Positions 3,323 through 59,910 of a stretch of 64,000 bases of DNA are shown here, in pieces. How positions within the stretch are numbered: the first letter of the stretch is position 1; each line of letters opens with the position of its first letter. Where the stretch lies: positions 176,604 to 240,603 of the forward strand of contig NW_004797821.1 of assembly GCF_000002075.1 (NCBI RefSeq), written 5' to 3'. The position numbers and the translations under genes are program-made. Below the pieces are notes generated by a model. It was given only the letters and a program-made list of their open reading frames with translations, was not told the DNA's origin and searched no databases. This stretch comes from Aplysia californica (lineage: Eukaryota).

Positions 3323-3514
3323 GGTGGTTGGCGGGTGCTCTGTTGTGGTTTGCTCCTTCTTTCCTATCAAACATCTATCGTCCTTATCTCTCCTCCTTCT
3401 TTTTGTGTTTGTTACTCTCTTGTAACACCTGTAATTTTCAGTACTTATTATAAGTCATATGACCTTATTGTGTTGCAAGTGCCGTAAAACTGACTATCTT
3501 ACTAAAAAAAAAAA
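3323..3514 (+). mobile_element. Family A short retroposon copy (LZIC intron)
   Basis: ggtggttggcgggtgctctg...gtgccgtaaaac...actaaaa; approximate TSD gaatgaaacatt / gaatgagacatt. Confidence 0.85.
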
Positions 3515-3760
3515 CAGAATGAGACATTTATTTGTGAGGAAAAAATTGGACAGGCTTTTCTGACTTTTCAAGATGAGCTGTTTGACATACAGTCTTGATG
3601 TTCTAGAAAAGGGTGCTGCCAGTGCAAAAGAAACATAGCAATTCAGTTGGGGCTTGGAATATTGTTCAAAGTATTCGCGAATATCAGTTTTGCGTGTTCG
3701 AGAGTTATAAATCTGTATTTAAATATAATGAGATGAATAACTGTGTTTGTGTTGTTCCAG

Positions 3761-3896
3761 GGCTGATCTGGAGCCAGAGGAGTATGAAGAGACCAAGAGT
3801 GAGACGGTGGAACAGCTGAAGGAATTCCAGGAAAACCTCAACAGGATGCTGGAGGGGAACCTCAGTCTGGTGGACGAACTCAATGCCATGCAGCTG
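3761..3896 (+). CDS. LZIC: LZIC coding exon 2 (ADLEPEEYEETKSETVEQLKEFQENLNRMLEGNLSLVDELNAMQL)
   Basis: ttccag acceptor, gtgagc donor, phase 2 to 0, LZIC-like sequence. Confidence 0.95.
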
Positions 3897-4651
3897 GTGA
3901 GCCGAGTTGTTTAGAGTGACTTTTGTACATAGTGCACTCTGCCAGTTGAATTTATTTGGTTTAGTCTGGGCAAACCAGATTTTCCTTCGTGGGGGTAAAG
4001 CTACCAGGTTGGAACAATTCAACAGAATTCGACCAACCTTCAAAATCAAACATGAGTTTGTTTTTCAAGGTTGCTAGTCGAACCGATCATAAATGTCAAA
4101 TGTGAACAGCTCATCACAAAGCTTGTAGCCTAGGATGAGCCACAATGTCAGGGTCATTTTTTTGTAATGCAACAGTTTGGTAATGGACTGTGTAGATTTG
4201 GGGAGGCTGATACTGATAGATTTTATAGATATATCCTATATATCTAAAAAGCTATGACATTTTCTGTGTCTGTGGGATTCAAGAAACTCTCAACACAGAA
4301 ACGGCAATGTCGTGAAGTGAACACTTGAAGTTGAACCCTTTGTTGAAGGAAAAGGCTTTATTATGAATGGTAATGGTAAGTTGTGTGTGCCATCTAACAC
4401 CATCTGGTGCTCTCATAACACGCCGCGATCCGTTCATCAAACGGTGAAAGTTTTCTGTTTCTTACTTATGGGCTGAATCTGATGCGACAGTGGAGAGGCG
4501 TATGTCATTTCTTCTAATTTCTTCAAGGCAAGGTATCTTGAGTGGAAGATTTTTTACCTATGTTTCCGTGGATCTCCTCCCATTTGGTTCAGTTTTTATC
4601 GGAGATGAATGTTTCTTTATTGCGAGGTCGAGCCTCTTTCATGACCTTGCA

Positions 4652-4864
4652 GTGGATGGTTGGTGGGTGCACTGGTGGGGTTTGTCTTTCTTTTCTATAA
4701 AAAATGTATCATTTTTCTCCCCACCTTCTTTACTTGGTATGTCACTCTCCAGTTATACCTCTAATCTGATTTATATTGCAAGTGCTCTACTCTCTAAAAA
4801 TACCTCTATGCCTATTTTATCTTGCTAGTGCTGTAAAACTTTTACTAAAGCAAGCTAAATTAAA
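4652..4864 (+). mobile_element. Family A copy, diverged
   Basis: gtggatggttggtgggtgcactggtgggg head and gtgctgtaaaacttttactaaa tail. Confidence 0.7.
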
Positions 4865-4957
4865 TAACCTCAGTGTTGAAAGACACTTTAAACCTATACC
4901 ATACAATCCAGTAGTGCACTTTGGACACACATGTACTTTTATCTTTTACTTTTACAG

Positions 4958-5056
4958 GCTATACAAGCTGCCATCAGTGACGCCTTCAAGACACCAGAAG
5001 TCATTCGTCTCTTTGCTAAGAAACAGCCTGGGCAGTTGAGGACAAGACTGGCTGAT
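4958..5056 (+). CDS. LZIC: LZIC coding exon 3 ([33 protein letters not shown])
   Basis: tttacag acceptor, gtacgg donor; near-identical to the conserved LZIC core [31 protein letters not shown]. Confidence 0.97.
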
Positions 5057-5690
5057 GTACGGGTTATGTATAACCACTGACATAGTTTTTTCAGACCTGT
5101 CCATGAAACATTTTTATTTTAATACGTTGTACAGTCTGTTGGATTAAAGGCACTCATGAAATTATGAGAACAAAGGAGATTATACGGGTTCTATAGCGAT
5201 GTATTGTTTTGCCCATAGTTTTACAGAGGTTTTTAACTTAATGTCTATGGCTAGATGAACCTTTTGGGTTTGATGGCCATTTTACTTCTTTTTTTATCAG
5301 TTTTTTTAAATCCAATCAAATCAGTATCCTTAAACTCTATAGTTGTCTCTCCATAGCCTGTGTATCCTAACTAGAACCCATAACCCCCTACCCGACCCCC
5401 CCCCCCCCCCCCCCCTCAGATTGTCTTCGACAGGTGGCCATTAGAGCAGGTTCGACTTGTACAAAAAAATGTGTGTGTGCGCGTAGGGGGAGCAGGGGGG
5501 CTGAGGGGGTAATATGTTGGCTTATTTTTTAATGACCCGTTTGTCGGGTGACAATATGTGGCCTTCTTGGGCGATTTCCACTCTGCCGGTACTAGAAATA
5601 CCATAGTCGGGATTCACATCATAAAGGGTCTGATGATAAGACTTTGCTCAGTCCATTGTATTGCTTTCTTTTCCTCCTCACGCTGCTCAG

Positions 5691-5868
5691 ATCTCCCGAG
5701 ATGAGAAGATCGGCAAGCTGCCCAAGGAACTGGCCATCCAGCAGTCTGTGGAAATCCTGACGGCCCTGAAAAAACTCGGGGAGCAGCTGACGGCGCCGGA
5801 GACAGCCTATCTGGAGCAGCATTCGTCCGGCAGTCTGCGACAGTTTGAGAAAGTCTCTGCCGATCTCG
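5691..5868 (+). CDS. LZIC: LZIC coding exon 4 (ICAT-homologous region, ISRDEKIGKL...EILTALKKLGEQLT...QFEKVSADL)
   Basis: ctgctcag acceptor, gtatgt donor; lies within ORF 5661..5921. Confidence 0.95.
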
Positions 5869-5930
5869 GTATGTGGGGGCCAGAGGTTTTTGGGGTTTTT
5901 TGGTTTTTGTTTTGTTTTTAAAATCCCTGT

Positions 5931-57944: not shown

Positions 57945-58092
57945 CAGTATAACACAGATAGCTCGAATTCGTTGGGACCGCCCTCGGTAATCCGAAGGAT
58001 CCGTAGTTCGAGGAATATCTTACAAAGATTTTTTTAAAAAAAGGAACGGCAGATTTCAAGTCTTCTGTGTTCGACCTATCCGGGTTATACTG
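57945..58092. mobile_element. Tc1/mariner-pogo-type MITE
   Basis: cagtataacac...gttatactg termini; same family as 62675-62851 and 63828-64000. Confidence 0.8.
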
Positions 58093-58217
58093 TCTGTACA
58101 TGATGTGGACCTGAACCTGCCAGTGGCACTCTCCAACCACCCGCAAAATGTCAGCCGTCGGCTGAGGTCTGTCAATTGACGATAACATGCGGTTGTTTGT
58201 GGTTTATGTCTCGGCAG

Positions 58218-58350
58218 TTGGTGGCCCAGAAGACGCGGTTTGCCCTGGACAGCGGTCTGGGCGTGGTCCCGTGTGTCGGCGAGAAGCTGGAGGAGAGAGA
58301 GGCCAACCAGACCATGGACGTCATCAACAGGCAAATGAAGGCCATCGCTG
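58218..58350 (+). CDS. TPI1: TPI exon 4 (LVAQKTRFAL...CVGEKLEERE...)
   Basis: ggcag acceptor, gtgagt donor, 133 nt. Confidence 0.96.
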
Positions 58351-58910
58351 GTGAGTACGCTGGGAAGATTTGAAAGTTTCCTTTTGTTGTAATTCATTTA
58401 GAAATGGCCCAATGTAATTTTAAAACAGTATAAGTGACATTGATTCTCAGCTGGGCTTTTTAAATCGTAACAGTGTTATGTTTGTAATGTAGAAGTCTGA
58501 CCATATTTTGCTGGGACCGATAAGAATTTTCATTTCCCACAAGTTGGATAACAGAGTTGAAATTTTACATGTATTATTTTGCTCCCTATGCCAGGTCGAC
58601 ATGTGTGTTGGGTAGGTTTTTAGGCCTAGTTGCTTTCACATTTTGATTTCAGATTGAGATTTTTGGCGTTGCTTTTTAAAACTCTTCATCTCTGATACTG
58701 ATAGGATCTGCCATTTTTTCTTGACCGATCACTGTGTGCCGGTCACTGTATTGTCTTGACCGATATAAGTCTTTCCACCTCTTCTGGTACCTAACCTAAC
58801 AGAACACCAGCAAGTTGATGTGTAGCGTGTAATCTTTGTTGAAGAGGAAGATTTCTGACTTTGATCGACTTATGCTAATGAATTTTTATTTGAAGTGTCT
58901 GATTCTCCGC

Positions 58911-59150
58911 AGTTGGCGGCGGTCACTCTGGTGTGATTTGCTCCTTCATTCCTGTCAAACATCTGTCGTCCTTCTCTGTCCCTTCTTTTCTTTGTATGTT
59001 AGTCTTTAGTAACACCTCTAATCTTTAGGACTTAAATGATTTATATATATGTGTTACAAGTGCTGTAAAACTTGTAACTAAAACAAAAAATTGGCCTTGT
59101 GCAGTTGCGATAGCCGCAAAACTCATACTTAAACAAACTAAAAAAAAACG
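58911..59150 (+). mobile_element. Family A copy plus a second stacked tail (TPI intron 4)
   Basis: gttggcggcggtcactctggtgtg...gtgctgtaaaac; then ccttgtgcagttgcgatagccgcaaaac. Confidence 0.75.
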
Positions 59151-59251
59151 AAACTCTGGTTGTCAGCATGCCACTTCCAGAAGTACCACTTTTGATCTGT
59201 ATAACCGTGTGCCGGTCACTGTATCGTCTGTTTCCCTCTGGTCACGTGCAG

Positions 59252-59425
59252 ACAAGATCGAAGACTGGAGCAAGGTGGTCATCGCCTACGAGCCTGTGTG
59301 GGCCATCGGCACCGGCAAGACAGCCTCGCCCGAGCAGGCGCAGGAAGTGCACGAGAAGATCCGCGCCTGGCTGGCGAACACCGTGTCTGCGGATGTCGCC
59401 AAGAAGACTCGCATCATCTACGGAG
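59252..59425 (+). CDS. TPI1: TPI exon 5 ([20 protein letters not shown]...RIIYGG)
   Basis: [11 protein letters not shown] signature with the catalytic Glu and loop 6; 174 nt. Confidence 0.97.
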
Positions 59426-59655
59426 GTGAGAAGAGCACGGCACTGCTTTGTATTATCTGGCGACCTCGGTGCTTTCTTGTCGCGTCTCCATTTGTAATAG
59501 GGACAGTGAAAACAGCTCTTAACAAAGAGTGAGCTTAGTAAGAAGTCTCACTGTTTGAAAAAATGGAGATACTACAAGAAAGCACTGAGGTCGCGATCTC
59601 TGTACAGAGGCATCTAAATTCCAATTGGATATTGTTTGATTTTTGTACCAAGTTA

Positions 59656-59910
59656 GTGGGTGGTTGGCGGGTGTCCTGATGTGGTCTGCTCCTTCTTTCC
59701 TATCAAACATCTATTGTCCTAGTCACTCCTCCTTCTTTTTTGGCGGATGGTGCTCTAGTGTTGTTTTCTTCTTCTTTCCTGTCAAAGTATCTGTCATCCT
59801 GATCTCTCCACCTTCTTTTTTGTGTTTGTTACTCTCTTGTAACTCCTCTAATCTTCGGCACTTATATGACCTTATTGTGCTGCAAGTGCCGTAAAACTTT
59901 TACTGAAACA
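59656..59910 (+). mobile_element. Family A copy with partial internal duplication (TPI intron 5)
   Basis: TSD gtaccaagtta at 59645-59655 and 59911-59921. Confidence 0.9.

Follow-up and report, generated by a model that had tools for sequence, protein, structure and literature searches.

Why do the copies of a short mobile element, spread through the introns of three neighbouring genes, all point in the direction of the gene that hosts them? The question is raised by a stretch of the Aplysia californica genome 64,000 nucleotides long (contig NW_004797821.1, positions 176,604 to 240,603; G000:C551:176604-240603 in our numbering), referred to here as the window, in which an LZIC-like gene, DDB2 and TPI carry numerous intronic copies of a retroposon with a body of about 180 nt. 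An earlier note, made from the letters of the window alone, had described a family confined to the sense strand of host-gene introns and enriched next to splice sites. Examination of the window and of the whole assembly (927,310,431 bp in 4332 contigs) reveals that this observation is real and general, the sense bias being strong but not exclusive. Open reading frames at other loci of this assembly agree in every residue with RefSeq proteins of A. californica.

The strand of each host gene is certified exon by exon through Pfam and PDB matches, with the exons searched singly rather than joined:

5673-5888, plus strand: exon of the LZIC-like gene (Pfam ICAT PF06384, E = 5.5e-25).
28886-29170, minus strand: last DDB2 coding exon, read together with further colinear DDB2 exons.
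31283-31417, minus strand: DDB2 exon, matching only DDB2 chains in PDB (E = 0.003, residues 345-388).
33899-34036, minus strand: WD40 exon of DDB2 (DDB2 chains, E = 3e-14; Pfam WD40).
58221-58364, 59251-59421 and 60924-61031, plus strand: TPI exons (Pfam TIM, E = 3e-9, 3e-20 and 2e-10, at colinear model positions 106-243).

The TPI stop codon lies at 61043. Every gap-bounded scaffold piece with copies in DDB2 also contains its own DDB2 exon on the same strand, the gaps being left unfilled, so that the sense relation is independent of gap bridging. The window was scanned with nhmmer, using a profile hidden Markov model (HMM) built from 41 genomic copies, which finds 35 element pieces. Those associated with the three genes are listed below, where family B denotes a second family that shares the 3' tail module:

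3321-3513, plus strand: full-length copy in an intron of the LZIC-like gene, in sense (nhmmer E = 4.3e-54, model positions 2-179).
4652-4853, plus strand: divergent-subfamily copy whose 3' end falls about 100 nt short of the acceptor of the exon at 4958 (nhmmer E = 1.2e-24).
5931-6109, plus strand: young full-length copy in the LZIC-like gene (HMM).
6566-6714, plus strand: copy lacking its 5' part, with about 70 nt between it and the acceptor of the last LZIC exon (nhmmer positions 47-175, E = 1.1e-12).
28090-28267, minus strand: copy beyond the DDB2 stop codon, in the presumed 3' untranslated region (UTR), in sense (nhmmer E = 1.3e-25).
29230-29299, minus strand: shared 3' tail module of a family B copy, where 24 nt separate the tail from the acceptor AG of the last DDB2 exon (HMM and reading of the flank).
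29431-29535, minus strand: element piece among the DDB2 exons (HMM).
30117-30296, minus strand: full-length copy about 110 nt before an acceptor (nhmmer E = 4.5e-51).
30485-30639, minus strand: copy covering model positions 20-177 (nhmmer E = 2.4e-22).
30750-31263, minus strand: full copy at 30750-30931, then four tandem 86-bp 5' half-units to 31263 (HMM).
31961-32136, minus strand: full-length copy (nhmmer E = 6e-43).
33146-33258 and 33381-33444, minus strand: two partial copies (HMM).
34060-34232, minus strand: full copy, with 16 nt between the end of its TACTAAAACTAAAAC tail and the acceptor AG of the exon at 34036 (HMM and reading of the flank).
34952-35118, minus strand: full copy about 125 nt before an acceptor (HMM and reading of the flank).
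40931-41995, minus strand: satellite of 42 bp x 24 (40931-41949) derived from element positions of about 32-82 and capped by a head fragment at 41906-41995 (HMM).
43099-43275, minus strand: full copy (nhmmer E = 1.4e-46).
44629-44702 and 44784-44871, minus strand: family B tail piece and a body fragment (HMM).
58914-59088, plus strand: copy in a TPI intron, in sense (nhmmer E = 1.1e-34).
59656-59742 and 59742-59912, plus strand: half copy adjoining a near-full copy in a TPI intron, in sense (HMM).

All pieces between LZIC exons lie on the plus strand, all between DDB2 exons on the minus strand and all between TPI exons on the plus strand, and the element strand flips three times within the 64 kb, at gene boundaries. 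Each copy named in the earlier note is recovered within a few bases and on the strand given there, although its inventory lacked the pieces at 14527-15160, 18228-18283, 20042-20078, 20705-20755, 28090-28267 and 63006-63279. Its chance estimate of 0.5^19 = 2e-6 does not hold: the copies are clustered and partly arise from tandem duplication, such that the independent unit is the gene, and the window provides three of three genes in sense rather than 19 of 19 insertions. Read by gene in this way, the window alone would accommodate a purely local accident, in which tandem duplication or insertion beside resident copies produced blocks that match three genes by chance. The arrays at 30853-31260 (86 bp x 4.7, 95% matches) and 40931-41949 are indeed duplications, and in a set of element-centred loci from elsewhere in the genome neighbours within 1.5 kb agree in orientation by 43 to 11. 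Against such an accident stand the flips of orientation between neighbouring genes in the window, and the genes and donor counts examined next.

Beyond the window, 29 loci of 3.2 kb were chosen solely by similarity to the copy at 3323, their exons being predicted by a hexamer model, which ranks the known window exons at the top, and checked in Pfam. In six element-centred loci with an exon certified in this way (Dynamin_N, Frizzled, Usp38-like_N, K319L-PKD, CBS and Zip) every copy is in sense, 18 pieces altogether. One locus, L051, contains a certified antisense intronic copy 1 kb upstream of a Sulfotransfer_1 exon, and in another, L060, four copies are antisense to a Methyltransf_22 reading frame but lie past its stop codon. 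A second set comes from dynein genes, whose bodies were certified over the span between the N2 and the C-terminal domains and crossed with the element places of pattern searches. The dynein gene on contig C1 (minus strand) holds three minus copies and one plus copy, that on C4 (minus) two minus copies and one plus copy, that on C7 (plus) one plus copy and that on C209 (plus) two plus copies. Together these four genes contain eight sense and two antisense copies; all four copies with the head motif are sense, and the two antisense ones are assigned by their tail sequence to other families that share the tail. A myosin gene on C32 and a kinesin gene on C284 contribute one sense case each. Some of the dynein, myosin and kinesin places come from lists built with splice motifs and are hence not unbiased, whereas the gene-located copies taken from neutral or oppositely biased lists are all sense. 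In the 1.5-kb flanks of intronless kinase genes, six loci are co-oriented with the gene and two are opposite.

Counted by gene, about 15 show a sense majority against one antisense (three in the window and about 12 further, versus one), and the sense fraction in genes is estimated at 85-95%. The claim of a sense-only family therefore stands for all LZIC, DDB2 and TPI intron copies and fails elsewhere: the certified antisense copy in L051 makes 'only sense' too strong, and the two antisense tail-sharing copies in dynein genes, together with polyadenylated (polyA) RNA in both orientations, point the same way.

An annotation-free test extends the observation to the whole genome. The consensus donor AGGTRAGT was counted within 300 nt of copies carrying a 17-nt head motif, of which there are 28,777 exact occurrences in the genome:

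Same-strand donors: 369 upstream of the head, 304 downstream of the tail.
Opposite-strand donors: 189 upstream of the head, 195 downstream of the tail.

Same-strand donors thus outnumber opposite-strand donors by 673 to 384 (binomial p = 5e-19), a result that survives when the roughly 13% of the 369 in which the 5' end of the element contributes part of the motif are removed. A non-splice control pair of equal composition gives 359 and 268. The reversed-motif control TGARTGGA is inflated by the variant head of the element (GTGGATGGTTGG) and by another repeat, and was used after removing those; about a quarter of the 359 and a smaller share of the 268 are repeat-derived, as estimated from 100 listed places each, and the control pair is nearly symmetric once the estimated repeat-derived matches are set aside. 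The genome-average expectation per arrangement is 182-237 donors, depending on how gaps are counted, and same-strand donors near copies reach 1.3-2.0 times that average. A first-order Markov background over-predicts the donor 8-mer, and because the random share of the motif is not fixable, donor counts place the sense fraction near donors anywhere between 70 and 98%; the certified genes suggest a value high within this range.

The scale of the agreement is that of genes. On contig C1, copy pairs 2-5 kb apart agree in orientation by 25 to 3, pairs at 5-10 kb by 29 to 14 and pairs at 10-20 kb by 34 to 27, with agreement at baseline beyond 20 kb; fading at about 10-20 kb corresponds to gene length rather than to replication domains. 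With about 15 genes in sense against one on different contigs and the genome-wide donor asymmetry, a purely local accident is excluded, and its probability is put extremely low. On the same contig, several back-to-back pairs have their heads outward and lie 250-850 bp apart, for example at 1311063(-)/1311316(+), 1354789(-)/1355159(+) and 1442496(-)/1443327(+); they may represent genes arranged head to head or a composite inverted repeat.

The nature of the element emerges from copies aligned together with their flanks. The 5' end is fixed at GTGGGTGGTTGGCGG, and the body runs into a 3' module consisting of a stem of 7-8 bp (GGCACTT...AAGTGCC), GTAAAAC and a CTTACTAAAACTAAA tail, a repeat of the (ACTAAA)n type that reads TACTAAA(A/C). 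A stem-loop is predicted at the 3' end, and the element folds more stably than shuffled sequence (z = -2.7). The insertions are flanked by target-site duplications of 8-15 bp, which vary between copies (loci L036, L038, L039, L040, L041, L043, L045 and others) and share no common target motif, and 5'-truncated copies occur at 6566, 33146 and elsewhere. The duplications, the fixed 5' end and the repeat tail form the signature of target-primed reverse transcription. A 30-nt head pattern with up to two mismatches has 46,065 genomic matches (23,043 forward and 23,022 reverse), whereas the reversed pattern, used as a control, has none; with tens of thousands of copies and target-site duplications, the designation as a retroposon family is borne out. 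The copy at 5931-6109 shares 93-96% identity with 40 copies elsewhere in the genome, an identity between closest copies which implies recent activity.

An Rfam search of 5931-6109 gives no family match at E<=1, and thus no tRNA, 7SL or 5S head. Moreover, a T6 run at consensus positions 81-86, kept in most copies, would stop transcription by RNA polymerase III. Judged by these features, the element is not a classical short interspersed nuclear element (SINE) transcribed by that polymerase. No C/D or H/ACA snoRNA family in Rfam matches the element either, leaving the snoRNA analogy of the earlier note unsupported, and no Rfam ribozyme, HDV-like ones at the 5' end included, matches it, a result obtained without a dedicated pseudoknot search. 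A weak CPEB3-ribozyme-like match at 6265-6320 (minus strand) falls outside the element and is probably due to chance. The last 55 nt or so of the element are common to at least two other short families, although no long interspersed nuclear element (LINE) carrying the shared 3' module was found among the sequences examined, and a metagenome scan for the head motif gave no match. Judging from these features together, the element appears to be a short retroposon without a promoter that depends on a LINE and integrates through target-primed reverse transcription.

Family B, with a body containing CTGTTGACATCCACCC, carries the same 3' tail module and is represented in the window at 29230-29400 and 44629-44775, as well as in loci L042, L053, L054 and L060. 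Its sense strand contains a donor-like AGGTGAGC and GTAAGT, and both window copies are sense to DDB2. A candidate start of family B at a perfect donor, AGGTGAGT, was rejected, as the motif proved internal when the copies were read.

The two strands of the main element are opposite in splice signals. A single AG occurs in the sense consensus, compared with 25 in its reverse complement, and 52 full copies average 2.1 and 22.2, respectively; the sense strand is 63% pyrimidine. The antisense strand starts with TTTTTTAGTTTTAGTAAG, continues with purine-rich stretches and contains two TTTAG and one GTAAG in the consensus. The suggestion that an antisense tail creates cryptic acceptors is in keeping with these TTTTAG repeats, the GTAAG and the 22-25 AG dinucleotides. 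On the sense strand, the tail TACTAAA(A/C) is close to the branch-point consensus.

In five of about 45 genic copies the tail lies 16-37 nt before an acceptor AG, where about one would be expected under uniform placement; the distances are 16 nt (34060), 24 nt (29230) and about 35 nt (L034, L041 and L058). Other 3' ends near acceptors in the window lie about 70-125 nt away, and the proximity described in the earlier note is reproduced. Genome-wide, the strict acceptor YYYYYNYAGG follows the tail motif 696, 539 and 550 times in three successive 31-nt windows, the first of which places the AG about 10-40 nt past the element and shows an excess of about 28%. The strict motif was adopted after the loose acceptor YNYAGG had given 4864 and 4903 in adjacent distance windows, which is pure background. 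Enrichment beside splice sites is supported, though weakly in numerical terms: the excess is real but modest.

Elements also abut splice sites directly. At about 31283 the DDB2 donor GTGAGT continues without a break into element sequence, giving a DDB2 intron that starts inside an element and consists of copies over about two thirds of its length, and in L039 a polypyrimidine-CAG acceptor forms the target-site duplication and now stands downstream of the element tail. Such arrangements raise the idea of an intron mimic, a mobile RNA made by the spliceosome (a lariat or debranched intron) whose insertions create or extend introns as introners do. The fixed 5' end GTGGGT, resembling a 5' splice site (GUGGGU), the TACTAAA(A/C) tail and the nearly AG-free body would suit such an origin. 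Where both flanking exons are mapped, however, introns are at least about 0.7 kb long and contain other sequence, with the copies inside them; 41 copies show no enrichment of AG immediately upstream of their 5' ends, the target-site duplications indicate ordinary target-primed reverse transcription, and family B, which shares the tail, starts without donor-like sequence. RNA-seq likewise shows no pile of read starts at the element 5' end. An intron mimic is accordingly regarded as improbable.

The reading tentatively favoured here combines removal of antisense copies with a preference for gene bodies. A sense copy, pyrimidine-rich, almost free of AG and ending in UACUAAA(A/C), would be tolerated anywhere in an intron, and its own tail could act as a branch site where it lies 16-40 nt before an acceptor. 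An antisense copy would present (UUUUAG)n acceptors, a GUAAG donor and purine-rich stretches, would disturb splicing and would be purged by selection, which should be efficient in a large marine population. The family would, in addition, insert or persist preferentially in gene bodies: purging of randomly inserted copies cannot account for same-strand donors at 1.3-2.0 times the average, and a gene-body preference is needed too. For an element with no promoter of its own, sense copies in host pre-mRNA are the likely source of its RNA, which would explain why the sense strand has stayed harmless. As an account of the bias, this combination is preferred to strand-specific integration, with a likelihood that we would place a little short of even.

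Strand-specific integration offers a different account, in which element RNA derived from host pre-mRNA is re-inserted in one orientation into transcribed genes. Reverse transcription might be primed on template-strand nicks of an active gene, often near the source copy, so that new copies would be sense at once and accumulate in the same genes. Copies do cluster in particular genes, with about 25 pieces in about 30 kb of genic DNA in the window against 9 in the other 34 kb, and many 3-kb loci hold two to six of them. Same-strand donors are enriched, without clear depletion of those on the opposite strand; diverged copies arranged in head-to-tail runs suggest that insertion at resident tails has recurred; and the element has no promoter of its own. 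Conversely, the target-site duplications have no common motif, antisense copies exist both in an intron (L051) and in polyA RNA, and a preference for gene-rich DNA without a choice of strand is common for short retroposons and, joined with selection, suffices for the data. We know of no strand-specific, transcription-coupled form of target-primed reverse transcription, which also counts against this account. It is possible but doubtful. The broader proposition that the sense bias is made at integration or RNA production and not by selection, whether through a spliceosome-excised RNA with a GU 5' end and a branch-point-repeat 3' end or through transcription-coupled integration, is judged unlikely.

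Several observations weigh against purging as the cause. Good donors inside the antisense body are few. The opposite-strand donor counts (189 and 195) are at the genome average and not clearly below it; if many genomic occurrences of the motif are real donors, antisense genic copies could be little depleted, with a sense fraction near donors of about 70%. The equal coverage of both orientations in polyA RNA, considered below, belongs here as well. Even the 'young' copies are several percent diverged, so that selection has had time to act on them, and the present data do not separate selection from insertion bias. The data fit both alternatives of the earlier note, the one in which copies are targeted to host pre-mRNA or expressed from it and the one in which antisense copies are purged for their cryptic acceptors.

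RNA evidence comes from polyA single-end RNA-seq reads mapped to positions 5600-7400 of the window. Depth over the element is about 400-3,000 and about equal in both read directions, unlike the prediction for a population transcribed nearly only in sense. This is not decisive, as mature RNA samples mostly UTR copies and a few abundant transcripts dominate the element reads. The LZIC exons and 3' UTR have no reads, through low expression or perhaps a loss of reads from conserved genes, leaving strandedness uncalibrated on an exon; the library nevertheless looks stranded, as implied by variant-specific direction skews (5936 T>A in 17 of 1232 reads of one direction and 356 of 1393 of the other; position 6108, 0 of 3 and 125 of 140). 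The 5936 T>A variant makes up about 30% of one direction in two runs and is absent from a third, and such sample-specific variants point to a few highly expressed element-bearing transcripts. Each run also contains about 1,000 reads with poly-T just before 6009 and about 850 with poly-A after 6089.

The same RNA bears on a further possibility, avoidance of double-stranded RNA, in which an antisense copy would pair with sense copies in cis or trans and trigger RNA interference or editing, fixing the majority orientation. The very high number of mutually similar copies and the frequent presence of several in one intron would favour such pairing, and the bias far exceeds the splice-signal effects known from mammals (PMC2911107, PMC3088655). 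Yet polyA RNA contains both orientations at similar depth, opposite pairs less than 2 kb apart are not rare on contig C1 (7 of 15), and neither the scarcity of AG in sense nor the resemblance of the tail to a branch point would be explained. Avoidance of double-stranded RNA is hence held to be about as improbable as the intron mimic.

The remaining element pieces of the window lie in stretches without a certified host gene:

14527-15160 (four pieces, minus strand), 18228-18283 (minus), 20042-20078 (plus) and 20705-20755 (minus): seven fragments (HMM).
63006-63279, minus strand: two fragments 2 kb past the TPI stop codon (HMM).

A Pfam scan of open reading frames at 12-27 kb provides no host gene for the fragments at 14.5-20.8 kb. 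Between 44872 and 58913 the HMM finds no element pieces, in agreement with the copy-free promoter zone described earlier. This zone between DDB2 and TPI contains an open frame with an ISXO2-like DDE transposase domain at 49030-49614 (minus strand; PF12762, E = 3.4e-17) and a short interstitial telomere-like repeat at 47407-47459 (AACCCT type, 18-bp period x 2.9). Within DDB2, an unrelated 40-bp x 12 array at 42126-42599 adjoins the 42-bp satellite in one intron, and a 61-bp segment at 31740-31800, adjoining the assembly gap 31502-31735, repeats positions 28962-29022 of the last DDB2 exon at 96.7% identity, representing either a local duplication or a gap-edge assembly artefact. At 35119-35400, immediately next to where the copy at 34952-35118 has its 5' end, the plus strand resembles the C-terminal zinc-knuckle region of a LINE ORF2 (..HHLLHC..), in agreement with the LINE end noted at 35120 as antisense to DDB2; the shared tail motif is absent from this stretch up to the gap at 35876. 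A weak tRNA-like match at 6443-6502 (minus strand; 18 bits, E = 0.86) is antisense to LZIC, at the place of the tRNA-SINE of the earlier note.

In the animals examined to date, mobile elements in introns show an orientation bias that runs antisense, and such bias is a textbook sign of selection. In Aplysia an abundant and recently active family runs the opposite way at about 90% sense, beside splice sites and with strands opposite in splice signals. If selection is responsible, the family exemplifies with unusual clarity how a mobile element can be moulded to escape the splicing machinery in one orientation, and offers a sensitive read-out of the removal of weakly harmful insertions in a large marine population. 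If integration is responsible, it would reveal a strand-specific link of transcription or splicing to retrotransposition, with a bearing on the growth and spread of introns. A bias arising at integration or RNA production would make it a retroposon living on the host splicing and transcription machinery, able to supply branch sites or intron sequence. Hundreds of Aplysia introns probably take their branch site from an element tail, and in an incompletely annotated genome of a neuroscience model the family marks the direction of transcription.

A LINE-dependent short retroposon is itself a known kind of element, and the literature searched holds no prior description of this orientation behaviour. 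Close to it in structure are the SINEs mobilized by stringent-type LINEs (L2-, CR1- or RTE-like partners), for example eel UnaSINE1 with UnaL2. Like these, the Aplysia element is short and non-autonomous, has target-site duplications, a 3' stem-loop and a short-repeat tail, and shares its 3' module with several families; unlike them, it lacks a tRNA, 5S or 7SL head by Rfam and contains an internal T6 run. To our knowledge, no SINE family of the stringent type has a sense bias of about 90% in genes. Among mollusc SINEs, the Nin-DC, CORE and MESC families include Aplysia members, which are tRNA-headed (PMC4758252); the words 'orientation' and 'intron' do not occur in that paper. These SINEs share with the present element the genome, a similar range of copy number and LINE-derived tails, and differ from it in their tRNA-derived heads. 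The 21-nt head motif has no match in the literature searched.

In vertebrates and flies, the orientation of intronic elements is likewise non-random, with antisense favoured, a pattern ascribed to splice and polyadenylation signals on one strand, and intronic elements are depleted near exons (PMC2911107, PMC3088655). The Aplysia element differs in favouring sense, in the far greater strength of its bias and in the placement of copies directly beside acceptors and donors. The nearest precedent for intron-hosted, sense-oriented retrocopies is provided by the snoRNA retroposons (snoRTs), retroposed intron-hosted RNAs that are often intronic and sense and are expressed through host transcription (PMC1687206). 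Unlike snoRTs, the Aplysia element has no match to a snoRNA family or box, a copy number three orders of magnitude higher and no sign of a processed stable RNA.

Introners (PMC9860276), which generate introns as transposable elements, resemble the family in lying in sense within genes, in their splice-like ends and in a target-site duplication able to supply an acceptor (L039). The Aplysia copies are distinguished from them by residing within longer pre-existing introns, by the absence of AG enrichment before the 5' end and by mobility through reverse transcription. Finally, antisense Alu exonization in primates, which gives only a mild orientation bias there (summarized in PMC2911107), provides a parallel in that the reverse complement of the tail yields a pyrimidine tract and a candidate AG acceptor. 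In the Aplysia element the antisense tail is instead a repeated TTTTAG followed by GTAAG, and the accompanying orientation bias is extreme.

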